A stretch of DNA of 64,000 bases from Utricularia gibba (Eukaryota; Plantae; Magnoliophyta), in NCBI GenBank assembly GCA_002189035.1, contig CM007990.1, positions 806,001 to 870,000 of the forward strand. Reading direction: 5' to 3'. Positions 6,451-54,958 of this stretch are shown one piece after another. The notes beneath the pieces are model-generated. The model ran no database searches. It was not told the DNA's origin and saw only the letters and a program-made list of their open reading frames with translations. Position 1 is the first letter of the stretch, and each line of letters begins with the position of its first letter. The translations under genes were made by a program, and so were the position numbers.

Positions 6451-8811
6451 ATGAAGGGGATGCCCCTGGCCTTTGATTTTGAGGGGAAGGGGGTGTTAGA
6501 CTTGGAGCTTATTGTAAAAAATCAAGGATTTTTCTCTAGTGGTTGTGCTGATTTCTACCAGGGGAGCTGCTTCTTCAACAACTGTTTTGTTGAGCCTACT
6601 TCTGTCCTGGATTCTGTTACAACTCCCAGTCAACTCACATCTTCCTCGACACTGTCTTCATCTCTCGGCGGCGGCGGCGGCGGCGGTGGGGGAGGAGCTG
6701 CTTTTACTGACTCTGCGGCTCTGGCTTTGGCTTCCGACGCGAACCCATCTAGTAAATGGCAGCAGCAAGATTCAACCACTGCCACGAGCACCAATGCTGG
6801 AGGGTCTGAGCCGGGGCTCCTCCCGATTCCGACGTCTCTTGAGATAGGAGGGGCCGTAGGCGGAAGCAGAGAACACCCGCAGAGATTTGAAATGGATGAC
6901 TGGAATTCCGTGCTGTCGGAGTCCGCCGCTGTTTCCCCCAGCCAAGAGCAGGCTATTCTCCGATGGTTTATGGGTGATGTGGAAGACACCGGTTTAGGTA
7001 ACCTGAACAAAGTTTTTCAAACGGGTGACGGCGGTGGTGGTGCAAGTGTAATGCCGTCGGCGGAGTACGGTTTTAGCGGTGGCTATGGGTCTGTGGATCA
7101 GGGCTTTTCTGGAAACCATCTGGGTGGTGGTCTCGTGCCCGCTCTTCCTGTCTTTTCCAGCAACGATAACAGATTCAGTACTTCGAAGCTTGGAATTTTA
7201 CCCAGTTCCGCGCCGTCAAGTCTGAAGCTTTCTTCGAATTCCCACGGCCTTGTTCACCCTTCTCCGGTTTTTAGCAGTTCAGGTTCCATAGCTTTCCAAA
7301 ATCAAACCCCATTTGATTCTCCTGCTGAAACGAAGCCGCAGACTTTGAATTCTGGTCTGCAGATGAACCAGAACTATCAAAATACTTCCTTTGTCCCTCT
7401 TTCATACACACAGCTGCAAGAGCAGGGTAGTGTTTATCTCCCCCCTCAGGCCAAAAAGCGAAACTTCCTTGGAATGGATGAGGATGGCATTCGCCCTGCC
7501 GGCGAGATCTCAAAAGGGCCATTCATTGACACTGGGCAGCAGGAGCATTTAATGGGAAGGTTCCTCCCGTTTAGTCTCCAGCAGCAGGTTCCTCATCCGC
7601 TTCAATGGCCTCCGCATCATCTGCCCCAGAGGCCAATCACAGAAGAAGAGAAGCCAAAGTTTGTTGCTGGGAAAGATTTAGAGAACTGTCATCAGCAACA
7701 GCAGCAGGCTACAGCCGATCAGCTGTACAAGGCGGCGGAGCTACTCCAGACAGGGAATCTAGTACTCGCGCACGGGATATTGGCGCGGCTCAATCACCAG
7801 CTTTCACCAATCGGCAAGCCTTTTCATCGGGCTGCTTTCTATTGCAAGGAGGCGTTACAGTTGCTCCTCCATTGCTCCAGCAACAACCTGAGTCTTCCCT
7901 ATTCGACTCCTCGGTCACCTCTTAACCTGGTTTCGAAGATTGGGGCTTACAGATCCTTCTCAGAGATTTCCCCACTCGTACAGTTTGCCAACCTCACTTC
8001 CAATCAAGCTATAATTGAAGCATCCCAGGGATCTGAGAGAGTTCATATAATTGATTTCGATATTGGGTACGGTGGACAATGGGCTTCTCTGCTGCAAGAA
8101 TTCTCCACACAGAGTGGATGTGCTCCTTCTGTGATGATCACTGCCCTGGTATCTCCCATGACTCATGATCAGGTGGAGCTCAGTCTGACTCGAGAAAACC
8201 TGATTCAGTTTGCAAGGGAGATCAATATTTCATTCAAGTTCCAGGTTGTGAGTATTGATTCACTGAGTTCTGCATCTTGGTTGAGACCTGCACACTCAGC
8301 AGACAATGAAGCAATTGCGGTGAATCTTCCTGCTTCATGCCTTGCAACTTACCAGTTCTCACTGCCCTCTGTCCTTAGGTTCGTGAAGCAGCTGTCGCCA
8401 CGAATCGTGGTCGCCGTCGACTGGGGGTGTGACCGGACTGATCTTCCCTTTCCCAACACCGTAATTCATGCCCTTCAATCATACTCCAGCCTAATGGAGT
8501 CCCTTGATGCTGCAGCTAATGCCCCTCTGGATGCTATTCAAAAGATAGAGAGGTTCTTGCTCCAGCCCGGGATCGAAAAACTGATCCTGGGCCGTTTTTG
8601 TTCTCCAGAGAAGATGCAGCACTGGAGGTCTATGCTGTTGTCAGTTGGATTCTCCCCTGTAAGCTTCAGCAACTTCACGGATGCACAGGCAGAATGCATC
8701 ATCAAAAGGACCCCCGTTGCAGGATTTCAAGTGGAGAAGAGGCAGTCTTCGCTTGTTCTTTGCTGGCAAAGGAAGGAGCTGATTTCAACTTCAGCCTGGA
8801 GACCCCATTAG
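6451..8811 (+). CDS. HAM: GRAS transcription regulator, HAM/LOM (SCL6/22/27) subfamily, 786 aa, intronless
   Basis: Contains GRAS motifs (HIIDFDIGYGGQWASL, PFYRE-like region, terminal SAW), the HAM-type N-terminus MKGMPLAFDFEGKG and an internal miR171 site. Confidence 0.96.
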   Translation: MKGMPLAFDFEGKGVLDLELIVKNQGFFSSGCADFYQGSCFFNNCFVEPTSVLDSVTTPSQLTSSSTLSSSLGGGGGGGGGGAAFTDSAALALASDANPSSKWQQQDSTTATSTNAGGSEPGLLPIPTSLEIGGAVGGSREHPQRFEMDDWNSVLSESAAVSPSQEQAILRWFMGDVEDTGLGNLNKVFQTGDGGGGASVMPSAEYGFSGGYGSVDQGFSGNHLGGGLVPALPVFSSNDNRFSTSKLGILPSSAPSSLKLSSNSHGLVHPSPVFSSSGSIAFQNQTPFDSPAETKPQTLNSGLQMNQNYQNTSFVPLSYTQLQEQGSVYLPPQAKKRNFLGMDEDGIRPAGEISKGPFIDTGQQEHLMGRFLPFSLQQQVPHPLQWPPHHLPQRPITEEEKPKFVAGKDLENCHQQQQQATADQLYKAAELLQTGNLVLAHGILARLNHQLSPIGKPFHRAAFYCKEALQLLLHCSSNNLSLPYSTPRSPLNLVSKIGAYRSFSEISPLVQFANLTSNQAIIEASQGSERVHIIDFDIGYGGQWASLLQEFSTQSGCAPSVMITALVSPMTHDQVELSLTRENLIQFAREINISFKFQVVSIDSLSSASWLRPAHSADNEAIAVNLPASCLATYQFSLPSVLRFVKQLSPRIVVAVDWGCDRTDLPFPNTVIHALQSYSSLMESLDAAANAPLDAIQKIERFLLQPGIEKLILGRFCSPEKMQHWRSMLLSVGFSPVSFSNFTDAQAECIIKRTPVAGFQVEKRQSSLVLCWQRKELISTSAWRPH
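7776..7796 (+). promoter_or_regulatory. miR171 target site in the HAM mRNA
   Basis: GATATTGGCGCGGCTCAATCA is the canonical miR171-complementary site, encoding GILARLN. Confidence 0.95.
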
Positions 8812-10189: not shown

Positions 10190-11393
10190 TGTAACGACCC
10201 GCGACCTGCACCCTAGGCCATTATTGACACCTAACACTCAGTATTGGTGTCCCAATCATTATGGGGTGGGTTAGGAACGTGGTCGAGGGTGCATTCCTCC
10301 CTTGCCACACCGCCATTCTTGGCACCTAGCGATCCCCGGCAGCATCCCTAGCCGGATCCTTTCGCCAAGACTCACCAAACAGCACAAGGAGCGAAGTAGA
10401 TATTTTATTAAGTCAAGACAATTCAAGGTTCCACACCAGGCGGCAAGCCTAGGCGCACGTCGCCACAACACAAAGGAAGAACGAACACAACCAGCAAGGA
10501 AATAGAGCTAAGTCACGAAGATAGAAGTAAGACAGCAAGTCTCGCCACACAGCCATCCACCACACATCCCAGTGATCACGCCTCACTCAACATCCACCTC
10601 CCCTGCACCCGCCTCGCCATCAGCCACGCCACCTACACAGGAAAGAGTAAGGGAAGTCAGTCCTATGCCACACGGCTCCTTCCCTAAGCCTAAACTACAC
10701 ATATTCACGAAGTTTCCCATCCGCACGATTCATCACTGCTGTTCGCACACGCTGCCCCCGCGAGGCATCTCCGTAACTTCTCGTATCGGCTCGCAGCCCA
10801 TCCTAGGCACCTCCGATGTTCTCATAATCAATCCGAACACCTTTCCACACAGAATCCTACATGTTTGGCACCTCTCCCACTGAGCACCAGTGCTCAGTGT
10901 TACAGCCATGACCGTAGTTCGATGGCCCCGCTTATTGCTTGCATGGCCTCACGACCCGCGTCTTCGCCGCGTTGCCATTGGGGGTGCACTCCCCAATCCC
11001 GCCGTAGCTCACAACCCCTCGATCACACAGCGAGGTGCCTCGATCACACAGCGAGGACTTTTAAGAACAAGACCATATCTCCACACACAAAGTTAGCTTC
11101 CACCAATCTGTCCCGCAGCGCAATTCAACCATAAAGCCCTTACCTTTGTGCGTTTTTCGTCTTCCTCTTGGAGTGGCTGCCGTCCCTCTCAGCTGGTGTC
11201 CCTTCCAAGGGCTCTAGCCCTTCTACTTATACCCGTAATTCGTCCTATCGGGTCCATCCTAAGCCCGTCGGGTCTACCCGGAAGACACGCAAGTCTAAGG
11301 GTTGTTCACAGGTACCCTCCCTTTTTAAGGTCAACCCCTTACCATGACCGCATCTTTGTCTCTTTTCTGAGGATTTGGGTCGGGGGTGTTACA
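10190..11393. mobile_element. Probable solo LTR of Ty3/Gypsy type, ~1.2 kb
   Basis: Termini TGTAACGACCC...GGGGTGTTACA form a TG..CA inverted pair around a GC-richer block with an internal 21-bp tandem duplication (~11027-11058). No PBS or internal ORF is present, and the flanks (CTGAT/GGTGC) are not a perfect TSD. Confidence 0.7.
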
Positions 11394-12162
11394 GGTGCAC
11401 CCTAAAACGAACGCCGCTGGGGTACCCTTCCCCTACATGACCTCCGGAGTTCGTTTTACTGTTATTTAAAAATTATTCCAAATAAGTCTAATGACGTGGT
11501 TATTCAATATGTCTATTACATACTCGGTAACATTATATTTTAACGCAACCACAACACTCAGCAAAGATACAAATACCTTCTTGGTTTTTTTTTTTTTTTT
11601 TTGAGTAAGTTTGACACCAGCATTCTAACTTACAACAAGAATAAAGATTTTAATTCATAAGTTTCAAAATTATGTTATATATCTTCTAATTTCCTTTTTT
11701 TTTTACAAATAGTTTGTTTTTTAATTTATTCAATTACATATTTAATTTCTCATGTTATAAAAAATAATTGATTTTGATTCTAACGTCGTTATAAAAAATC
11801 ATTATATAAAACATGATATAATTATTGTCAATTTAAATTATATGAGATATAAATATGATATAACTATCATCACTTCTAATCATACCAGATACAAATACGA
11901 TATGACCATCATCATTTTACCGAACTTGGGACATGAATGCAAAAAGATCAAATATTAAATTTTATTGAGTTTAAATAAGAGACAATATATGATATCGTAA
12001 ATTGATTCACTTTTTAAAAATTTTGAAAATTGTTTAGATTTTCGTTGTAGGGTTTTGAAAACTTTATGTGTATGTTTTATAATTTTGAAAATTAAGGATT
12101 ATAATATTTATAGTTTTATCTTTTTTAATTATAAAAATATTATTCATAAAGGGCAGCTCCAG

Positions 12163-14109
12163 GTGCGGCGGCGTTGCGATTATGTGGGGTGCTCTGGCGA
12201 GGATGCGGCGGAGGAGATCCCATCTCCTTCCTCCATATACGAGTTTCCTTCCTCCCCAGGAACCTAGTAACCCCCTGTGCCGTCAGCACCTCCCGATTCC
12301 ATAGCCCAGCCGTTGTTGCTGCTGGTACGTTCCTGCTGCGGCAAAAACAAAGGATTCTGAATCTCCCCAGAACTCACCCACAAGGGACCTGATTCCTCCC
12401 CACGAGAAAACGAGGAAGGATGGATGCTGGCGGCAGAGTGCGGCACGACATCATCGGAAAGTTTGAGTCCAGAAAAAGCCCGATCAATACCCTGATCGGA
12501 AGCCTGAAGATTGCAAAACGAGGCTGCATCATCTCCCGGCGAAAAGTTTGCGAACAGCAGCAACCACTGATCGGAGAGGAAAAGACGGGGATGAAATGAA
12601 TGAAAGGGGTGTGGGGATAAAACAGGGAGAGGAACGAGAAAAGGCAACCAACGGAAAAGGAGGCGGCAGCCCTGTACAAGTGGACGCCGTTTGGAAGATC
12701 ATGGCGTTGAACATGCATGGCTGCGTAGGCCATGAGAGACATGAGGAGCTTGATGAAGACAGCAGGAGCGTAGCTCGGTAGAGGACTGCGGCGGTCTGCA
12801 CAACCGTTTGGAGAAGACAGACAGAAGTTGACGAACACATTCAAATTCTTGGCCCAATATATACTCCCGGTCATAAGCTGTCTGTCTTCTCCAAACCGTC
12901 GTGCAGACCGCACAGTCCTCCACCGAGCTACGCTTCTGCTGCCTTCATCAAGCTCCTCATGTCTCCCATGGCCTATGCACTATGCAGCCATTCATGTTCA
13001 CGCCATGATTTTCCCCAACAGAAGAAACGGCGTCCACTTGTACAGGCTGCCGCCTCCTTTTCCGTTGGTTGCCTTTTCTCGTTCCTCTCCCTGTCTATCC
13101 CCACACCCGTTTCATTCATTTCATCCCCGTCCTTTCACTCTCCGATCAGTGATTGCTGTTCGAAAACTTTTTCGGGGGAGATGATGCGGCTTCGTTTTGC
13201 AATCTTCAGGCTTCCGATCAGAGTATTGAACGGGCTTTTTCTGGACTCAAACTTTCCGATGATTCCTGCCGTACTCCGCCACCAGCGTCCATGCTTCCTC
13301 GTTTTCTCGTGGGAGGAATCAGGTACTTTGTGGGTGAGTTGTGGGGAGATTCAGAATCCTTTGTTATTGTTGCTACAAGAATACGAGCCTCTTGACGACT
13401 CAGAGTGTTCTTACTTTTGCCCTTGATTATAACAGGCTGAAGCAAATCATTCACTAAATTTAGACAATCCGATGTTGGAGTAGCAACATCCATAACGTAT
13501 GAAAGATATCTCAGTTTCGTGTATGCATCGGAAACTCCATAGTAAGATGCAAACTCAGCCGTCAACCACGCAGTGGCAAGTTTCTGTGCTGAAACTGTTG
13601 GATTTTCATTGCAGCCTCCAACACGCACTTGTGGCTGTTTTCATCTGGAGTTGTTGAATAACTGATCGATAATTGGATTCTTTTCTTCCAACTTGCTCAT
13701 GCTCCGGTTCATGGTATAGGAAACATGTACGTAGCTTCTCACCCAATTCATCAACAATATCAGCCACCTGAACCTCGATCAAAATGTCATCTCCGAGTCC
13801 ATCCGGCAGGAGTATTCGGATTCCGCTTTCTCCTGCTGCATTCTCACAGGATCCTCTTCTTGAGAGCTTTTTAGTCGTAATAGACAGGAATATGATTCTG
13901 GTACCACTTCGTAAGATGGTGAGCTGCCCCTCCAAGCATTAACAACCAGCAGCAACAACGGCTGGGCTATGGAATCGGGAGGTGCTGACGGCACAGGGAG
14001 GTTGGGTTACTGGGTTCCTGGGGAGGAAACTCGTATTCGGAGGAAGGAGATGGGATCTCCTCCGCCGCATCCTCGCCAGAGCACCCCACATAACCGCACC
14101 GCCGCCGCA
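12163..14109 (-). repeat. Unit U1: giant inverted repeat. Inner arms 12346-12824 / 12878-13365; outer arms 12163-12326 / 13945-14109.
   Basis: Direct reverse-complement matches, e.g. AACAAAGGATTCTGAATCTCCCCA vs TGGGGAGATTCAGAATCCTTTGTT and GTTTGGAGAAGACAGACAG vs CTGTCTGTCTTCTCCAAAC. Loop is ~53 nt. Confidence 0.95.
13385..13944 (-). pseudogene. Intronless, frameshifted fragment of a plant C2/Munc13-homology gene (AT4G24610-like, annotated 'pesticidal crystal cry8Ba protein')
   Basis: Peptides SYEVVPESYSCLLRLKSSQEEDPVRMQ, LPDGLGDDILIEVQ, EPEHEQVG and AEFASYYGVSDAYTKLRYLSYVMDVATPTSDCLNLVNDLLQPVIIKGKSKNTLSRQE occur in the expected order but in shifting frames with deletions. Family assigned from recall. 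Confidence 0.82.
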
Positions 14110-14263
14110 TGGATTCCTGCGTAGGGAATGACAGATGTGAGGAACACGATGAAGACAGCAGGAGCGGAGCTCGACGGAGGACTGCGGCCTGCTCCACAGC
14201 GCTTTGGAGAAGAGAACTCATGAACGGGACGACACATTGAGTAAGGGATTTGAACATCTTCAT
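13945..14263 (-). pseudogene. Most complete copy of gene 'Z' (small hydrophobic ORF, distant relative of X), frameshifted
   Basis: MKMFKSLTQCVVPFMSSLLQSAVEQAAVLRRAP^APAVFIVFLTSVIPYAGIHAAAVRLCGVLWRG..., with a 1-nt deletion (GCTCCGCT) relative to sibling copies (GCTCCCGCT at 14813 and 25313). Confidence 0.6.
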
Positions 14264-14338
14264 CGTGGAGGGGGACTTGCAGAAGGAACAGGAGATGATG
14301 GCAATGCCCACCCTCACCGGAAATGTTCTCCTGATTAA

Positions 14339-14677
14339 AATGCTACAAGTCTTCTAGAGTTTATATAATAAAAAAATAACAATATTATTACGTAAATACA
14401 TACTATATATTACGTTAATATAATAATAGTAATAAATTATTATAATATATATAAGTAATTAAAATATTTTATAAATTATAATTAAATATTTTAAAAAATG
14501 ATTTAATTATAAATTTATAAAATATTTGTTTTATTTTTTAAAGGTATTTATTTATATATTATCTTTTAATAATTTATTACAATTTATTATATTAAAGTAA
14601 TTTTTTTTTTTTTTTGTATTCACATAATATTATTGTTATTTTTTTGTTATAAAAAGACTAGAAGACTTGTAGCATTT
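14339..14677. promoter_or_regulatory. Divergent pair of duplicated TATA promoter cassettes driving U1 leftwards and U2 rightwards
   Basis: TATATAAA on minus (14360-14367) and TATAAAAA on plus (14648-14655) are each followed by the identical TAGAAGACTTGTAGCATT and a homologous leader. The AT-rich upstream block is also inverted. Confidence 0.65.
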
Positions 14678-14711
14678 GAATCACTTCTCCAGGGAAAACC
14701 CCATCGTCTCC

Positions 14712-15082
14712 TATTCCTTCTGCAAGCCCCCTTTCATGATGGAGATATGCCGTCCCTGGTCATGAGTTCTCTTCTCCAAGCCGTTGTGCAGACCGCCACA
14801 GTCCTCCATGGAGCTCCCGCTCCTGCTATCTTCATCATGTCCCTCGCGTCTCTCGTGGCCTACGCAACCAGCCATGCGGCGGCGATGAGATTACGTCGGG
14901 TGCTTGGTTGCAAAGGCATGAGGGACACGAGGAACTTGATGGAGACTGCAGGAGCGCAGCTCGGTGGAGGACTTTGGTGGGCTGTAGAACGGCTTGGAGA
15001 AGAGAAGTTACGATATATTGAGTGATGAATTTGAATATATTCATCAGTTTCTCCGTCATGGAGGCGGCGGCTTGCAGATGGA
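14712..15082 (+). repeat. Unit U2 hairpin 1: fold-back of gene Z sequence
   Basis: TTCTCTTCTCCAAGCCGTT pairs with AACGGCTTGGAGAAGAGAA. The stem continues with mismatches to GCAACCA/TGGTTGC; loop ~14874-14901. Confidence 0.9.
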
Positions 15083-17001: not shown

Positions 17002-17463
17002 TCACGCCGGCGCGGCGTCCGCCGTTGCGTCGTCATCTTGCCAACTCCTAGCCTTGTGGTAAATGCGCCGGACGTTTTCCCAATTCACGACGGCGAAGGT
17101 GGGCGGCGAGAGCACCAGGGGGACGTAGAAGGAGTAGTGGGGAGAGACGAAGAGGGAGAAGAAGGAAAGGGTTGCGACGATTGCCGAAAATGAAGCTGGA
17201 AGAAACATCAGCTCGTCCAACGGCGGCCATATCCCGTTCAGGGCATCGATTGTCCAAAACGCGAAGAAATTGGCGATGAAGAGTCTCATCATGGGGACCT
17301 GCAGAGGGTCTATCCCCCGTATTTGGTATGTCACCAGAAGGATACCCAGCGGGATCGGAATCAACCTCCCCGTGACGATCTTGAACACCTCCCGCAGCGC
17401 CTTTATCATCTTCGGACCCCTCGGAGGGTTCCCTTTCTCGGCCTCCGGCGGCGGAGCTCCCAT
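17002..17463 (-). CDS. Gene X-A: intact intronless 153-aa hydrophobic protein (predicted 3-4 TM), function unknown
   Basis: Complete ATG-to-TGA ORF with TATATATAA ~80 nt upstream (17541-17551). It is colinear with X-B with mostly conservative substitutions. Confidence 0.8.
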   Translation of the reverse strand: MGAPPPEAEKGNPPRGPKMIKALREVFKIVTGRLIPIPLGILLVTYQIRGIDPLQVPMMRLFIANFFAFWTIDALNGIWPPLDELMFLPASFSAIVATLSFFSLFVSPHYSFYVPLVLSPPTFAVVNWENVRRIYHKARSWQDDDATADAAPA

Positions 17464-23031: not shown

Positions 23032-23478
23032 TCACACTGGAGGCGACGGCGGCTCGGAATCCACAGCTCCCTCTTCCCTTTTGGCGACCTTGTGATAAAG
23101 CACTCGCATGGTTTCCCAGTTCGAGAGGACGAAGATCGGCGGAGAGAGCACGAGGGGTATGTAGGAGGAGTACCGGGGAGGTGCAAACAGAGAAAGGAAG
23201 GAAAGGGTTGCAGCGATGGCGGAGAAGGAAGCAGGGAGGAGCATCAGCTCGTCCCATGACGGGGAGTAGACGCCGCTCAGGGCGTCGATTATCCAGTAGG
23301 CGAAGAACATGGCAAGGAAGAGCCGCATCATCGGAACCTGAACAGGATCCACCCCTTTTACTTGATACGTTACCAGAAGGATCCCCAATGGGATCGGAAT
23401 CAGACGCCCCGTGATTTCCTTGAACACCGCCCGCAACGCCTTCATCGTCGACGGCCTGGATTTCGCCGTCCGCCGCAT
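23032..23478 (-). CDS. Gene X-B: intact intronless 148-aa paralog of X-A
   Basis: The first ATG is at 23478 (the ORF track begins at a TTG). Translation is MRRTAKSRPSTMKALRAVFKEITGRLIPIPLGILLVTYQ...PPSPPV*, with a TATATA element ~80 nt upstream (~23556-23562). Confidence 0.8.
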   Translation of the reverse strand: MRRTAKSRPSTMKALRAVFKEITGRLIPIPLGILLVTYQVKGVDPVQVPMMRLFLAMFFAYWIIDALSGVYSPSWDELMLLPASFSAIAATLSFLSLFAPPRYSSYIPLVLSPPIFVLSNWETMRVLYHKVAKREEGAVDSEPPSPPV

Positions 23479-24425
23479 CAACCAGGGCCTGAAATCGAGG
23501 ATCAGAAGGGAAGAAAGGATGTACAGTGTGGCCTTTCTTCGCCGTGTTGGGTTCAATATATAGGTAGATAGGAGGAAGAAGAAACTCTAGACAGAGGGAT
23601 CTGGTGGGGGATGGGAATCATCCCCCATACCTCTACATTTATCTCACCTTCACTCCAGCCTTTTCTCCTTGCTTCAGCTCAAGTTGAAATAAACTAAACT
23701 ACATTCAATGCTGCAAACGAGAGAAGGAATGACTCGCAGCAAAGGAAGCATTGAAAATGAAGACATGAGGAAGTACCCGGGGATGGTACTTCGAATGCAA
23801 AATACTTATCACATTTGTTGATCAATTGTGGGGAAGACGAGATCTGCTCCTTTAATTCAACACACTCAAATTATTAGAACAAACAATCACGACGTTATTT
23901 TAAAATAAAATAATCAATTATATGAAAAATTATATATCATATTAATCAATTAAATTTAATATTTTTAATGTGATATATGTATTTTTATATATTTAGATTT
24001 TAGGTATGTTTATCTATTCATCAAATTCTTCATTTGAATAAGAAGAAAGTCAAAAGATCAGGATGGCAAATATCATAATAAAATCAAGAAACGTCGACCT
24101 ATCCGCAATTAAATGAAACCTGCACAAGCGAAAGGTCATGGCCAATCCACGTCGGCCATCTATTATTTACCAATTTTTACGTAAATTTTTTTTTCAAACA
24201 CTCTTTAAAAATACATATAATATGGACGACAAAATATGTTAGATACAAAATTAATTTAAAAATTTTATTAAAAAGCTGTAAAATAATTAATTAAATCAAT
24301 TTATGAAACATTTTTTTATTATTTAAACGTATTATTAACGTATTTTATTTTAATAATTTATTACTGTTATTATATTAATGTAATATGTATTATGTATATA
24401 CGTAATGCTATTGTTATTTTTTTGT

Positions 24426-26490
24426 TATAAAAACACTAGGGTTTGGACAGTGTATCCTCATCCACAACACTCCTCCAGGACAAACCTTCCCGGTGACCGT
24501 GGAGGCCGTAATCGCCTCCTATTCCTTCTGCGGGAGGTGTTCAAAACACTCTGCAGGTCTCCAGGATGAATTTCTTTGCGTATTGGATGATCGATGTCCT
24601 GAACGGAATATGGCCGCAGTTCAACGAGCTTCTGATAAATGACAAGAATGGTTTCCCAGTTCGCGGGGGTGAAGATCGGGGGAGAGCACGGGTTGGAAAT
24701 TTGGTGTTGGAGAAGAGCTGTGTGTGGAGAGTGGTTTAGAAAGAGTACCGTCGATGTGCGAAAATAGGGAGGAAGAAAAGGCTTCCCGTGATTCGAGGGA
24801 GGAACATCAACTCCTCCCACCGTCCAAGGCGCTGCGGGAGGTGTTCATCACGGAACCTGTTTCCCGTCTCCACGATGAAACTATTCATCGCTGAATTCTT
24901 CGCGATTTGGATGATCGATGCCCTGAACGGGATAGGGCCGCCGTTTGACGGCCTTCTGGTAAGCGATATGAATGGTTTACCAGATCAAGAGGAGGAAGAT
25001 CGGTGGGGAGAGCAGGAGCGGTGCGTAGAAGGAGTACCGCTGAGGTGCGAAGAGAGAGAGGAATGAAAGGCTTCCGGTGATTCCTGAGAAGGAAGCAGGG
25101 AGGAGCCGATGGAAAGTAGATCCACCCTTTCTCCCCTACCGATCCTCGATTTCGTACCCTTTTACATCGGCTCCTAACTGCTTCCCAACAAGACTTGTAG
25201 TATTTTAATTATGAGTGCTCAGAAACTGATGAATATATTCAAATTCATTACTCAATATGTCATGAGTTCCCTTCTCCAAACCGTTGTGCAGCCTACGACA
25301 GTTCTCTATCGAGCTCCCGCTCCGGCTGTCTTCATCATGTCCCTCAGTCTCTCCTGACCTACGCCAGCATCATGCGGCGGCGCGCGCGATTCTGTTGGGT
25401 GCATGGTTGCGTAGGCCATGAGAGACGAGGAATATGATGAAGACCGCAGGAGCATAGCTCGGTGGAGACTATGGCGGGCTGCACAACGCTTTGGAGAAGA
25501 GAACTCATGACTGGGACAACAAATTGAGTGATGAATTGGAATGTGCTTATCAGTTTCTCCGTCATGGAGGGGGGGCTTGCAGAAGGAAACGGAACCTTCC
25601 GAGGGGTTCGAAGATGATGAAGGCGCTGCGGGAGGTGTTCAAAACCCTCTTTCACGTCTCCATGATGAAACTATTCATCTCTAATTTCTTCGCGTTTTGG
25701 ATGATCGATGTCCTGAACGGGATATGACCGCCGTTGAACGACCTGCTGATAAACGACATGCAAGGTTTGCCAGTTCAAGAGGACGAAGATCATGTGCGAA
25801 GAGAGAGAGGAATGAAAGGCTTCCGGTGATTCCTGAAAAGGAAGCAAGGAGGAGCCGATGGAAAGTAGACGCTGCTCAGGGCGTCTAATATCCAGTAAGC
25901 GAGGAAATGCCAAGGAAGAGCTCATTGGGACTTCAAGAGGTCCACTGCTTTTACGTCGTAGTTGCCATATGGATCTTCAGCGGGATCGGAATCAAACTCC
26001 CGGTGACTGCTTTGGAAACCTCCCCAACGCCTTCATCTTCAAGGGGATCCACCCCTTCTGATGAGGGCGTTGAGGGGAGGTTTTCAAAGCAGTCACCAGG
26101 CGTCTGATTCCGATCACACTGGGGATCCTTATGGCAACTTATGACGTAAAAGCACTGGATAAGTCCCAATGATAGGCTTTTCCTTGTCCTTTCCTCGCTT
26201 ACTCGATAATAGACGCCCGGAAGGCGTCTACTTTCCATCGGATCTTCCATGCTTCCTCCTCCGCAATCGCAGCAACCCTCTCCTTCCTTCCTCTCTTTGC
26301 AGCTCCCCGGAACTCCTCTTACGTACCCGTCGTGTTCTCCCCGCCGATCTTCGTCGTCTCGAGATGGGAAACCATTCGTCATTTATCAGAAGGACAAGGC
26401 TAGGAGTAGGGAAGATGATGACGTGGTGGTGGACGGCGCGCCGCCACCCTCTCCGGTGTAACCCGCCGGCGATACTATTTTTCAATTAGG
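24426..26490 (+). repeat. Unit U3: promoter cassette plus chimeric X/Z array. Includes a Z hairpin (25221-25558) and an X hairpin (25735-26037 / 26060-26400).
   Basis: TATAAAAA at 24426. AGAAACTGAT..CTCAAT pairs with ATTGAG..ATCAGTTTCT. AACGCCTTCATC/GATGAGGGCGTT closes a 22-nt loop. Confidence 0.92.
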
Positions 26491-37056: not shown

Positions 37057-38051
37057 TCAGATTCTTGGCGGCGGACCCTCCACCGTCACTGCCGGACACC
37101 CTGAATTTTTTATTTAAATGATCCGCATTTCAAAAGTGTTCATTTGATTGCTGAATGTCGATATTACATCACTGCAGAAAGAAAGAAGAAACTTCACTTG
37201 GGAGGTTTTCTGAAGCAGAGTTGGCGGCGGGGGTGGTTTCCATCCGAGACTTGGTGGAGTTGTCCAGACTCGACGGCTGGGGTGGCTTTCTTCTCCGGCG
37301 GTTGTGATCCGCCAGCCTTCTCCGGCAACTCCTCTTCCCGTTATCGAATTCAGACAGCAGGTGGAATCTACAAAGAAAGGGAAGTAAAAGACCCCTGAAA
37401 TCGATTTGCCAGCGATGGGTGGATAGACGGAGACTGACTCCTTGTTCAAAGAACTGTGAAATGGCAATGAGAAATGCGATAGAACCTGCTACACTGTTGG
37501 CAGAATCGTTGAGTGAGGCCGGCGGTGATCACGGTGGCGGCTTTGGAGTGAAACTCACAAACCTTATGACGGCGATGATAATGCTTGGCGTAAGTGAGAT
37601 CGGCGTTGCAGCCCTGAGCTTGGCACCGGGGAGCATGAACGGAGCCAGAATCGAAGATTCTCGAACGGTGATACAAAAGATTCAAAAAATCATCATCGGA
37701 GGAAGAGAAATAGGTACGCCCACCAAAACCCAGGTTCAATCCAATTCTACTGTTCGACTCAAAGCTCCAATGCTCGGGTTCATTTTTCGGAACCACCACG
37801 AACCCCGACGCCATCGCCGCCCCCTGAGCAACCCCTTCATAGAAACCAAAGAACCCGGGGCTTATACCCTGGTGGTGGTGATACAAATAAGCCTCATTTG
37901 TCGGCGCCGCGGCGAACTGAACCTCCGGGAGCAAAAAATTTCCAGGGTAAGGATCCAAAACGTGAGCATTGTTGGAAACCTGAGACGACGATTCTTCCCC
38001 TGTGACCGCAAGCAACATCGGCGATGGATTCCCCCACTGGTAATCCAGCAT
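37057..38051 (-). CDS. SPL8: SBP-box transcription factor SPL8. Exons 38051-37486, 37367-37198, 37100-37057; C-terminus shortened by an early TGA.
   Basis: [10 protein letters not shown] start, RIGLNLG..GRTYFS motif and a complete SBP domain ([10 protein letters not shown]...RFCQQCSR|[27 protein letters not shown]). Confidence 0.93.
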
Positions 38052-38811
38052 CTCCACCCAAGAACTGGAATTGCTCTCTGCTCCACTGCAAGTACATATA
38101 TACATGGCATCGGTATGGGCCAGGCAGAGAGAAGCCAGCTCCGTTCCCCTCTTCGGTATTCGTGCCAAAAGCAGAGGAAAATTCAAAACCCTAATGGTGG
38201 AAGGAATTAAATGTGGCGACCCTGTGTTCCACGGCATTTACTCCATGGGGCCCTGGTCGCCGGGCCCCGGCTGCCGGACCACCGACCCTGCAAGTGAAGC
38301 CGGTGGCAAAGCAGGGTTAATCATTCCCCTCCTTCAATGCACGTGACTAAATAATTACACCAATGCCCCAATTATTAGCTTAATTACAGCGACAACACCC
38401 TCGTTAGTTACACGCCTGTTTTCTTAACCACCAACACCATCAGCTTTTTTTTTTCTTCAAAAAATTACGTTTTTTAAATGAAAATTGAGATTATATTTGA
38501 TTTATTTAAATTATTTAAATGTGGTCATATTTATAAAAAAATATTTTTTAAATATTTTCCCTTCTATTTTTTTTTATATTTTACATTTATTTCGAGTATT
38601 CATCTTTTTTATAATTAAAAATTTTTCAAAGTATAATAAAAAATATTTTTCAAATTTTGAATTATGAAACTTTGTATAATGTTACTATACAATATTTTAT
38701 AAATTTAATTACTAGGAGAATTAATATAAATATAAATATTTTGACAATACTTTCTATTCATTAAACACATGAAAATTAATATTTATAAGTAACATTTTTT
38801 AATAAAAAAGG

Positions 38812-52282: not shown

Positions 52283-54958
52283 ATGTCGGCAGCCTGCGGC
52301 ATTTTTACGAAGGATCTCAAGTTCAGCCTATTGCGGTCTCTCGTTCACCGAACTTTTTTGGAAGTGCTGTTTGTTCCTCTCCAAAGGCAGGGGATTAGTT
52401 TTCAGTTGATACCGGTAGCTTATTTTGGGAGCTCTAGTACGATTCAGGTTGCTTCGGGTTTCGAATTTATTGAACAGATTTCACCGTTGGACCGTAATCT
52501 CGTTAGTTCAACCTCGAGGACGATTCCGGTTGCTGGGAGTTTTGATTTTCTTCAGCAACTTTCACCATTAGACCGTAATTTCGTTACCTCAATCGATGAT
52601 TTTATAAATGCAAATGAAAGACGCAGGCTTGCCGTTGCACTTTCGAGTATTGTTAAAGAGGGAAACGGGGATGTTTTATTGAGGTTTTCTAGTGAATTTT
52701 GTAGTTTTAACCTTGTACAGATGATGAAACTACTGCCGGATCGGCAGCTTGCGATCGCATTTTTCAGATGTGTGTTTACTGATCATTCGAAAAGTGTGGT
52801 TCAAAGATGTTGTCGGGCTGTGTGTATATTAGATTCTGAAGATTTTAGGTTTCTAGCACAAGATTTGCTCACATGGGTGATCCGTGCTATAGGAGAACAG
52901 AGGAGTCATGAAGAAGTATGGCACGAATTTCGTGAGACTTGGTTTGATTTTCACATTCTAGATACACTAATGCGCGCCTTTGTAAATGCAGAAATGGCAT
53001 CTACTGCTCTGGAAGTTATTTCCAGGATTAGAGAAGTTGGTTATAGGCCCTCTATATCAGCGGTTTGTGTTTTACTAAAATTGCTATTTAACTCTGGTGC
53101 GTTTAGTAGTGCGTGGAAGCTCTTAAGAGAGATGATCCATAAGGGGCCTGTGCCTTCACTTTATGTGTACAATATGATGATTCTTGGATTTTGTAGAAAG
53201 GGGAGCATTTGTATTGGAGAAAGCTTGTTGTATGTCATGAGAAAGTTTCGATGTGAACCTGATGTCTATACCTATAATATTCTGATCAATGCATATTGTG
53301 TCAGGGGTCGGACACAGGATGCATTACAGTGGTTACAGTTAATGGTTGAATGTGGTTGCAGCCCCAGTTCTGCTACCTTTAGCACACTCATATCTGCATT
53401 TTCCAAAGAGGGTAATATTATGGAAGCAAGAAAAATCTTTGATCAAACGCAAGAAATGGGTGTGCTTCCTCACACTGTATTGTATAATGCTATGATGGAT
53501 GGCTACGTGAAGGCCAGAGAGATTGGCCTTGCAAAAATGCTTTATCAAGAAATGAAGAGCAAGGGTGTGGCTCCTGACAGCGTGTCTTTCAACATTTTAG
53601 CATCCGGTCTTTGCAAGTATTCCAAGGAGGTGATCAATGATACGTATCTGATGAACTTATCACATGATAGATGTATTTCAGGACTATGTTGGGCAGGGAT
53701 GCTTGATGAAGCTTCAGAACTCTTGGAAGATTTGCTTGAGAAAGGTGTGCCTCTTACAGTATTTTCGTTTAACACCTTAATCGATGCTTTCGCCAAAGCT
53801 GGCTTCTCTGGGAAAGCTTTTGATACGTATGAAAAAATGGTGGAATATGGACAAACTCCTTCTGCTTCCACATTTTCTTCACTACTACTAAGTTTATGCA
53901 AAATTGGAATGGTAGAAAAAGCTAGATCCTGTATGTATGAGATGATACAAAAGGGGTATCCCCTAAGCAAAGTCGCTGTTACGAATGTTCTAGACAGCTA
54001 TTTCAAGGAAGGTGACTTTGATGGAGCTCAGGGTCTATGGGATCAAATGCATATGCTGGGGATGGCTCCTGATGCTGTTGCCTTTTCTGCTTTTATTGAC
54101 GGTCTTTGTAAGGAGGGTTTTGCTGAGGAGGCATATGGCTCGCTCTCAAGGATGATTCGAAGTGGACTTGTGCCCAACAACTTTGTCTACAATTCTTTGA
54201 TCTTCGGTTTCTGCAGTCAAGGAAAACTAGATGATGCTTTGAAGCTAGAGTGTGAGATGAGGGAGAGAGGATTGGTACCAGACGTTATAACCTTCAACAT
54301 TATCATCAGTGGCTTCTGTAAACAGGGAAAGATGAAGGAAGCCATGCATGCCTACAAGAAGTTGCACCAGCGTGGATTCATCCCTGATGTGGTAACATAC
54401 AACACTCTGATCTCTGGATACTGCAAGCAGTTCGACATGCTTGCTGCTGAGGACTTGGCCAACACCATGAGGTACACAGGCCAGCCCCCTGATATCACAA
54501 CCTACAACATTCAGATTCATGGTTACTGCAGAAGCCAGAGGATGGATCAAGCCATTGTGGCGTTTGAAAGTTTAGCATCTGTTGGGATAGTCCCAGATAA
54601 GGTTACCTATAACACTCTTATGACCGGTGTGTGCCATGATATACTTGAGCGTGCAATGATGCTGACAGCAAAGTTCCTTAAACTGGGGTTTTTACCAAAT
54701 CTGGTCACAGCCAACATGCTGTTGTCGAACTTGCGCAAGCAAGGGCTGCCTCGGCAGGCGTTGATGTGGGCGCAACGACTGAGGGAAGTTTCTTTCGAGT
54801 TTGATGAGATAACTCATGGCATATTGGAGGATGCATCCCGTGATTTAGAGAGTGGTGTGGAGTACAGAGAAGAAATGGTAGCCAGGGGGCACTTGCTGGA
54901 CTTTCTGATGCGCATAACGTATGATTTCATCCAGAAAAGCAAGACTGGGTCTGGGTAA
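52283..54958 (+). CDS. P-class pentatricopeptide repeat protein, 891 aa, intronless
   Basis: Tandem ~35-aa repeats such as PDVYTYNILINAYC, PDVITFNIIISGFCKQG and PDVVTYNTLISGYC. Confidence 0.96.
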   Translation: MSAACGIFTKDLKFSLLRSLVHRTFLEVLFVPLQRQGISFQLIPVAYFGSSSTIQVASGFEFIEQISPLDRNLVSSTSRTIPVAGSFDFLQQLSPLDRNFVTSIDDFINANERRRLAVALSSIVKEGNGDVLLRFSSEFCSFNLVQMMKLLPDRQLAIAFFRCVFTDHSKSVVQRCCRAVCILDSEDFRFLAQDLLTWVIRAIGEQRSHEEVWHEFRETWFDFHILDTLMRAFVNAEMASTALEVISRIREVGYRPSISAVCVLLKLLFNSGAFSSAWKLLREMIHKGPVPSLYVYNMMILGFCRKGSICIGESLLYVMRKFRCEPDVYTYNILINAYCVRGRTQDALQWLQLMVECGCSPSSATFSTLISAFSKEGNIMEARKIFDQTQEMGVLPHTVLYNAMMDGYVKAREIGLAKMLYQEMKSKGVAPDSVSFNILASGLCKYSKEVINDTYLMNLSHDRCISGLCWAGMLDEASELLEDLLEKGVPLTVFSFNTLIDAFAKAGFSGKAFDTYEKMVEYGQTPSASTFSSLLLSLCKIGMVEKARSCMYEMIQKGYPLSKVAVTNVLDSYFKEGDFDGAQGLWDQMHMLGMAPDAVAFSAFIDGLCKEGFAEEAYGSLSRMIRSGLVPNNFVYNSLIFGFCSQGKLDDALKLECEMRERGLVPDVITFNIIISGFCKQGKMKEAMHAYKKLHQRGFIPDVVTYNTLISGYCKQFDMLAAEDLANTMRYTGQPPDITTYNIQIHGYCRSQRMDQAIVAFESLASVGIVPDKVTYNTLMTGVCHDILERAMMLTAKFLKLGFLPNLVTANMLLSNLRKQGLPRQALMWAQRLREVSFEFDEITHGILEDASRDLESGVEYREEMVARGHLLDFLMRITYDFIQKSKTGSG

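Follow-up and report, generated by a model that had tools for sequence, protein, structure and literature searches.

The fold-back at 12164-14109 is a nested inverted duplication and forms the leftmost and largest member of a cluster of fold-backs that, according to self-BLAST, spans ~12-33 kb of the window (the whole 64,000-nt stretch of Utricularia gibba DNA analysed here). We propose that a piece of a conserved plant gene, here called MHD1-type, was inserted into it as filler DNA, and that the locus is a candidate source of endogenous inverted-repeat siRNAs (endoIR-siRNAs) that arose as a neutral by-product of local rearrangement and is no tuned regulator. We put the probability of this overall reading at about 0.6.

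Genomic setting of the fold-back

The window is plant nuclear DNA, in which Pfam recognised one gene each of the GRAS (6451-8811, intronless), PPR (52283-54958), SBP-box and RRM types. Neither an Rfam family at its gathering score nor a tRNA was found in it, and an exact-sequence look-up of four window proteins retrieved no identical entry from the protein collection. A scan for bacterial-type promoters and terminators was set aside, being irrelevant to plant DNA.

Several features of the surroundings are recorded here in their own right. A C-rich, strand-asymmetric block with short ORFs only (10190-11420; GC skew -0.23 at 10-12 kb), which may be a TE remnant, precedes the fold-back's AT-rich flank on the left. 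The AT-rich left flank itself contains a 42-nt unit repeated three times in tandem (11809-11934; 62-74% identity to the first copy). Two ORFs of 263 aa overlap almost completely on opposite strands (37419-38210 (+) and 37446-38237 (-)); the SBP domain is encoded by the minus-strand ORF, and the plus-strand ORF has no Pfam match. The CpG observed/expected ratio is 1.1 and 0.96 in the intact orphan X genes (17002-17463 and 23032-23556 (-)), compared with 0.57-0.58 in the GRAS and PPR genes and 0.57-0.73 in the X-derived fold-backs. An Atlas search of X-A was uninformative (scores ≤0.85).

Two stems and an unpaired bulge

The inner stem has a left arm of 483 nt (12342-12824) and a right arm of 492 nt (12878-13369) on either side of a 53-nt loop (12825-12877); both repeat search and BLASTN recovered the two arms, the BLASTN self-match covering 1063 columns at 86% identity (E = 0). 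The outer stem is formed by 12164-12326 and 13945-14109 (BLASTN 91% identity with gaps, E = 5e-59; 93.5% at aligned sites in the global alignment). Global alignment of the inner arms gave 455 matches, 39 substitutions and 45 gap columns, with 92% identity at aligned sites and ~12 indels. In the self-BLAST of the 64-kb window the 12164-14109 fold-back is the longest self-complementary match, followed by 14076-14907 (880 columns, 73%).

The RNA of 12330-13381 has a minimum free energy (MFE) of -872 kcal/mol on the minus strand and -868 kcal/mol on the plus strand. For the 911-nt core (12400-13310) the MFE is -763.5 kcal/mol against -303.7 ± 7.6 kcal/mol for shuffled sequences (z = -60.7). When the entire minus-strand RNA 14340-12150 was folded, a check suggested by the first-pass annotation, both stems were present in the MFE structure with 454 inner and 156 outer pairs, while the 563 nt between them (13382-13944) formed a bulge that is unpaired with the stems and folds mostly on itself. 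The annotation had described this fold-back as the longest hairpin of the window, with ~480-bp arms, a ~53-nt loop and a second outer stem, and as no fresh duplication, given the substitutions and small indels between its arms; all of this agrees with the coordinates, the alignment and the fold obtained here. Seven perfectly paired runs of 22-48 bp each (202 bp in total) survive in the arms, so that dicing of a transcript would be possible.

The fold-back is built on a Z unit

Both tips of the inner stem are copies of the Z core, a sequence of ~110 nt of which alignment detected seven copies in the window, in both orientations (the two tips, 14108-14213, two in 14760-15010 and two in 25260-25545). 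The left tip (12712-12824, sense on the minus strand) was delimited by the alignment of the seven cores, and the right tip (12878-12990, sense on the plus strand) by BLASTN and alignments; the left tip shares 79-86% identity with 14108-14213, 14770-14870 and 25400-25500 in BLASTN. Z gives no sign of being a protein-coding family. Substitutions among the seven cores are distributed 18/16/16 over the codon positions, indels interrupt every frame, and a word-indexed protein search with the 116-aa Z1 ORF yielded no relatives.

The units Z2 (14.7-15.05 kb) and Z25 (25.2-25.55 kb) have a sense and an antisense core flanking a ~40-nt spacer and thereby form hairpins of ~240 nt. Z1 shares their plan on the minus strand, with cassette, leader, sense Z core, spacer and antisense Z core in this order. 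Read from 14345 on the minus strand, the cassette is followed by the leader, the 5' part, the sense core (14213-14108) and then the common ~40 nt (14109-14072), and the antisense core with its 5' part is found far downstream at 12990-12825. As the antisense core runs on into the 5' part, the 53-nt loop is Z 5' part, and the loop is indeed homologous by alignment to the stretch immediately upstream of a Z core (12823-12862 versus 15013-15052, 78%). The leader, 5' part and core of Z1 (14110-14345, minus strand; 79% identity to 12712-12817 in BLASTN) lie outside both stems.

The spacer of Z1 is ~1.1 kb long compared with ~40 nt in Z2, and is made up of another ~125 nt of unique sequence, the bulge and a segment that we call W. 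The left half of the fold-back (12824-12164) is a second-order inverted copy of this spacer, lacking the bulge, together with the antisense core. The right arm of the outer stem (13945-14109, minus strand) is the Z1 3' part, contiguous with the Z1 core (BLASTN, alignments and MFE), and the left arm (12164-12326) is its inverted copy by BLASTN and alignment, which pairs with 13945-14109 in the MFE structure; what the outer stem has in common with other Z copies is confined to its first ~40 nt. Between units, Z cores share 76-86% identity, compared with 92% between the arms of the fold-back, which implies that the secondary duplication is younger than the Z family. A further level is added by the region 14076-14907, where Z1 and Z2 diverge from a common AT-rich cassette, which in turn forms an inverted repeat (14332-14425 versus 14590-14683, 80%); the resulting palindrome of 880 columns (73%) is centred near 14490.

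The middle of the stem and the gene fragment in the bulge

Segment W occupies the middle of the inner stem (12342-12711 in the left arm; 12991-13369 in the right arm, inverted, with 91.5% identity to 12342-12692). Its sole match in the window is the partner arm, blastn and tblastx having found no other paralogue or parent in the 64 kb. Pfam gave no match for any ORF of the fold-back, W included, and no protein relatives were found for the two long ORFs of W (127 aa, W and outer stem; 179 aa, core and W) by word-indexed searches, which are limited to proteins between 0.55 and 1.75 times as long as the query. The same window search (tblastx, blastn) found no parents of the outer stem or of the MHD1-type fragment.

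These results modify the earlier view of the stem as a mosaic with Z in the centre, an unrelated gene fragment in the middle and the Z 3' part outside. Z is present at the tip, and the outer stem starts with Z-derived sequence; beyond its first ~40 nt, however, the outer stem is not common to other Z copies, and the middle has no detectable gene origin. With Pfam, protein searches and the search for window paralogues all empty, a gene fragment at 12342-12711 / 12991-13369 was not corroborated, and the sole recognisable fragment, of MHD1 type, sits in the unpaired bulge and not in the stem.

This fragment was recognised through a stop-free minus-strand stretch (13640-13221), for which a phmmer search against 1.84 billion representatives returned 132 matches, 60 of them with E ≤ 1e-10. 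The matches are mostly angiosperm proteins of ~700-1400 aa, aligned around their middle, and are labelled by their sources as 'MHD1 domain-containing protein' in Brassica napus, as 'pesticidal crystal cry8Ba protein' in Trapa, or as hypothetical; E values go down to 1e-24 for single-copy members. In BLASTX ~217 aa are collinear with the Genlisea protein P0005 (aa ~413-629) and the Erythranthe protein P0004, in four pieces (13940-13818, 13836-13684, 13681-13565 and 13568-13377) with 64-78% identity. The fragment (13374-13940, minus strand, by phmmer and BLASTX) contains three frame changes and two internal deletions (13 and 11 aa) and corresponds to ~20% of the protein length. On homology, it is a dead piece of a conserved plant protein family of ~1000 aa, its frame not intact. 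In its less conserved parts Lamiales proteins show 56-64% identity, versus 29-49% for those of Linum, Trapa and Oxalis, which points weakly to a host within or close to Lamiales.

The MHD1-type family is widespread, conserved and uncharacterised, and its name comes from the source labels only; no Pfam domain (E ≤ 0.001) was found in eight full-length members (P0005-P0010, P0017 and P0032; 700-1231 aa), nor a PDB relative by sequence for the one member tested. The best phmmer matches are the predicted Salvia splendens proteins P0001, P0002 and P0003. P0001 (2492 aa) comprises seven tandem copies, with a period of ~325 aa, of the segment that is captured in the fold-back, which shows that the MHD1-type gene piece has been amplified independently in a Lamiaceae genome.

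The fragment (13940-13374, ~565 nt) coincides with the unpaired region (13944-13383) to within 4-9 nt at each end, and in the global alignment the left arm carries an 'empty' junction at its position. The possibility that the right arm is also MHD1-derived, raised by the ORF 13640-13221 that spans from the bulge into the arm, was rejected; homology stops at 13377-13374, and only Papaver and Manihot proteins extend it, weakly, into the arm. Being located in the unpaired bulge, the MHD1-type fragment would be no primary dsRNA substrate.

Promoter-like cassette and transcribed strand

The motif TATATAAA was confirmed on the minus strand at 14367-14360, within an AT-rich promoter-like cassette (14346-14480, minus strand) that was identified by motif search and by alignment of its five copies, in which a TATA-like element is conserved. 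A 24-nt leader that we tested is exactly present in three X-type units and nowhere else in the window; the Z1 and Z2 leaders resemble each other and are distinct from the X-type leader. The AT-rich left flank gives only a weak alignment with the cassette. A second TATA-like motif (12121-12138, plus strand; 3 mismatches to the cassette TATA motif) is located ~30 nt before the left end and points into the fold-back. The proposal that the minus-strand TATA at 14360-14367 transcribes the whole structure is therefore sustained as far as the motif and its conserved five-copy cassette are concerned, but its choice of strand is not, as both strands fold equally and the motif at 12121-12138 also faces inward, from the left. 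We consider the odds that the locus is transcribed to be about even.

Decay of the arms and potential targets

The inner arms differ by 22 transitions, 17 transversions and 45 gap columns. Nine of the differences would remain G:U pairs in the plus-strand RNA and 12 in the minus-strand RNA, CpG transitions account for 7/21, and identity along the inner arm shows no gradient, none towards the tip. The differences look like the neutral decay of duplicated sequence, with neither strand asymmetry nor an excess of pairing-preserving changes.

Outside the locus, the 64-kb window contains no exact match of ≥20 nt to the fold-back. The longest exact matches outside the fold-back are two 19-mers, one in the Z1 core beyond the right outer arm (14148) and one in Z25 (25408). 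With the whole Z1 unit set aside, only 21-mers of the Z core have matches with 1-3 mismatches in the window, and these are to the Z2 and Z25 hairpins. The first-pass annotation had expected siRNAs against at least two gene families, an expectation that is not supported, Z having neither a coding signal nor protein relatives and the rest of the window containing no exact match of ≥20 nt.

The same observations bear on the reading of the locus as a working hairpin-RNA or proto-miRNA gene, in which a minus-strand transcript from the Z1 TATA would give rise to siRNAs silencing Z and the parent of the fragment in trans. The great stability of the hairpin (z = -60.7), the TATA within a conserved five-copy cassette and perfect dsRNA runs of up to 48 bp would suit such a gene, and the MHD1-type fragment is on the same putative transcript, so that secondary siRNAs by transitivity are possible in principle (PMC10827316). 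However, that fragment is unpaired and heavily decayed, Z has neither coding signal nor protein relatives, W has no relatives, the arm differences show no strand asymmetry or excess of pairing-preserving changes, exact matches of ≥20 nt are absent from the rest of the window, and the Rfam matches described below are structure-driven and far under gathering scores. We regard a working gene of this kind as unlikely, although it fares better than the other alternatives considered.

Comparison with known classes of inverted repeats

The hairpins from which endoIR-siRNAs derive are imperfect and often extended, and their processing relies mainly on DCL2/3/4 and is RDR-independent; IR71 is the model endoIR and Mu killer a functional example, and endoIR repeats are suspected to be starting points of MIR genes (PMC10827316). 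The fold-back resembles endoIR and hpRNA loci in being a long inverted repeat that can adopt an extended, imperfect hairpin structure. Like Arabidopsis IR71 and IR2039 (PMC10827316) it is a long, imperfect, non-coding intramolecular inverted repeat, of the type that serves as DCL2/3/4 substrate with no need for RDR. Unlike IR71, which has a stem of ~3 kb, it has one of ~0.6 kb, split by the 563-nt bulge, and is situated in a cluster of sibling fold-backs. On structure, we assign the locus to this known class as a candidate endogenous inverted-repeat locus.

With young MIRNA genes, in the model of Allen et al. 2004 as cited in PMC10827316, the fold-back shares an origin by inverted duplication and the progressive decay of the arms, and its sibling hairpins Z2 and Z25 have a pre-miRNA-like size. 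It differs in that its arms derive from no recognisable protein-coding gene, the stem is far longer (454 + 156 bp, compared with the short stem of a MIRNA) and no Rfam family reaches threshold. No MIRNA precursor matched at the Rfam gathering score. A MIR533 identity of the tip (39.9 bits versus 80) was rejected, the alignment following structure only. The MIR839 match of the Z2 hairpin (14770-15002 (-); 61 bits versus a gathering score of 200, E = 5e-11, full model) was likewise rejected; it shows base-pair agreement with little sequence identity and is probably structure-driven.

In maize Mu killer, which silences MuDR, a locally made inverted duplication gives a hairpin transcript, according to its citation in PMC10827316. 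The fold-back is likewise a locally made inverted duplication; unlike Mu killer, which as cited there has a defined, near-identical target, it has none to be seen in the window. A further comparison is with the X fold-backs of the same window (25.8-32.5 kb), with which it shares the cluster, the cassette family and a history of repeated inverted duplication and decay. The arms of the X fold-backs derive from the orphan X gene, of which intact copies are nearby, whereas 12164-14109 contains no X sequence and shows no tip-ward gradient of identity.

A transposable element, either a foldback element or MITE or a Helitron or Pack-MULE with a captured MHD1-type fragment, is slightly less probable than a hairpin-RNA gene and in our view improbable. 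It would account for the terminal inverted structure and for the captured host gene fragment. Against it, the flanks have no direct repeat, a target-site duplication being absent both at 12163/12164 versus 14109/14110 and around the fragment; the right outer arm runs straight into the Z1 core and leader, so that there is no element end; no further copy of W or of most of the outer stem occurs in the 64-kb window; and the neighbouring units resemble tandem local duplications with a common promoter cassette. Palindromes can be produced by chimeric long reads, but an assembly artefact, either a chimeric fold-back read or a mis-join, is most improbable here, since it would be near-identical and symmetric, and the ~8% arm divergence, the ~12 indels and the one-sided 563-nt insertion rule out a chimeric read.

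Origin and significance of the fold-back

Our preferred reading is that of a nested inverted duplication with inserted filler DNA. A second inverted copy of the Z1 spacer and antisense core makes up the left half, and produces the 483/492-nt arms and the 163/165-nt outer stem. The equal divergence of the two stems (92% and 93.5% identity) implies that a single duplication event gave rise to both. With K ~0.075-0.08, the duplication would be a few million years old at typical plant neutral rates, if no gene conversion took place.

The MHD1-type fragment would then have been inserted in the right arm as filler DNA at a repaired break in the fragile palindrome. Filler DNA is a kind of insertion seen at repaired breaks in plants. 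PMC8395108 mentions filler DNA at junctions. Insertion is more parsimonious than the alternative, in which the left arm would have lost the fragment by a precise deletion.

RNA polymerase II reading through from the Z1 cassette, or entering from the left, would generate an imperfect dsRNA of ~454 + 156 bp, which DCL2/3/4 may dice into a heterogeneous population of 21-24-nt endogenous inverted-repeat siRNAs. Apart from their own locus, these would match only the sibling Z hairpins of the window, at 1-3 mismatches. The fold-back is thus probably a structural by-product and, as such, a candidate source of endogenous inverted-repeat siRNAs. What counts against a mere by-product is that the perfect runs (202 bp) and the TATA of the five-copy cassette make expression and dicing plausible.

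A far more speculative scenario, to which we give little credence, is that an expressed Z1 hairpin is diced in its stems and thereby triggers secondary siRNAs from the single-stranded bulge, recruiting the MHD1-type gene as a new silencing target. If true, a silencing link to a conserved MHD1-type gene would have been caught at birth, emerging from a rearrangement-prone cluster of orphan hairpins.

Under the nested-duplication reading, the features that set the locus apart are limited to the sharply bounded captured fragment and the three nested levels of duplication; otherwise it is an ordinary candidate endoIR. It also has value as part of an unusual cluster, in which at least six fold-backs have a promoter-like cassette in common. 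New miRNA and siRNA genes of plants are presumed to be built from long endogenous inverted repeats, and with its three rounds of nested inverted duplication and its sharply bordered gene fragment the locus illustrates cleanly the growth of such loci and their uptake of foreign sequence.
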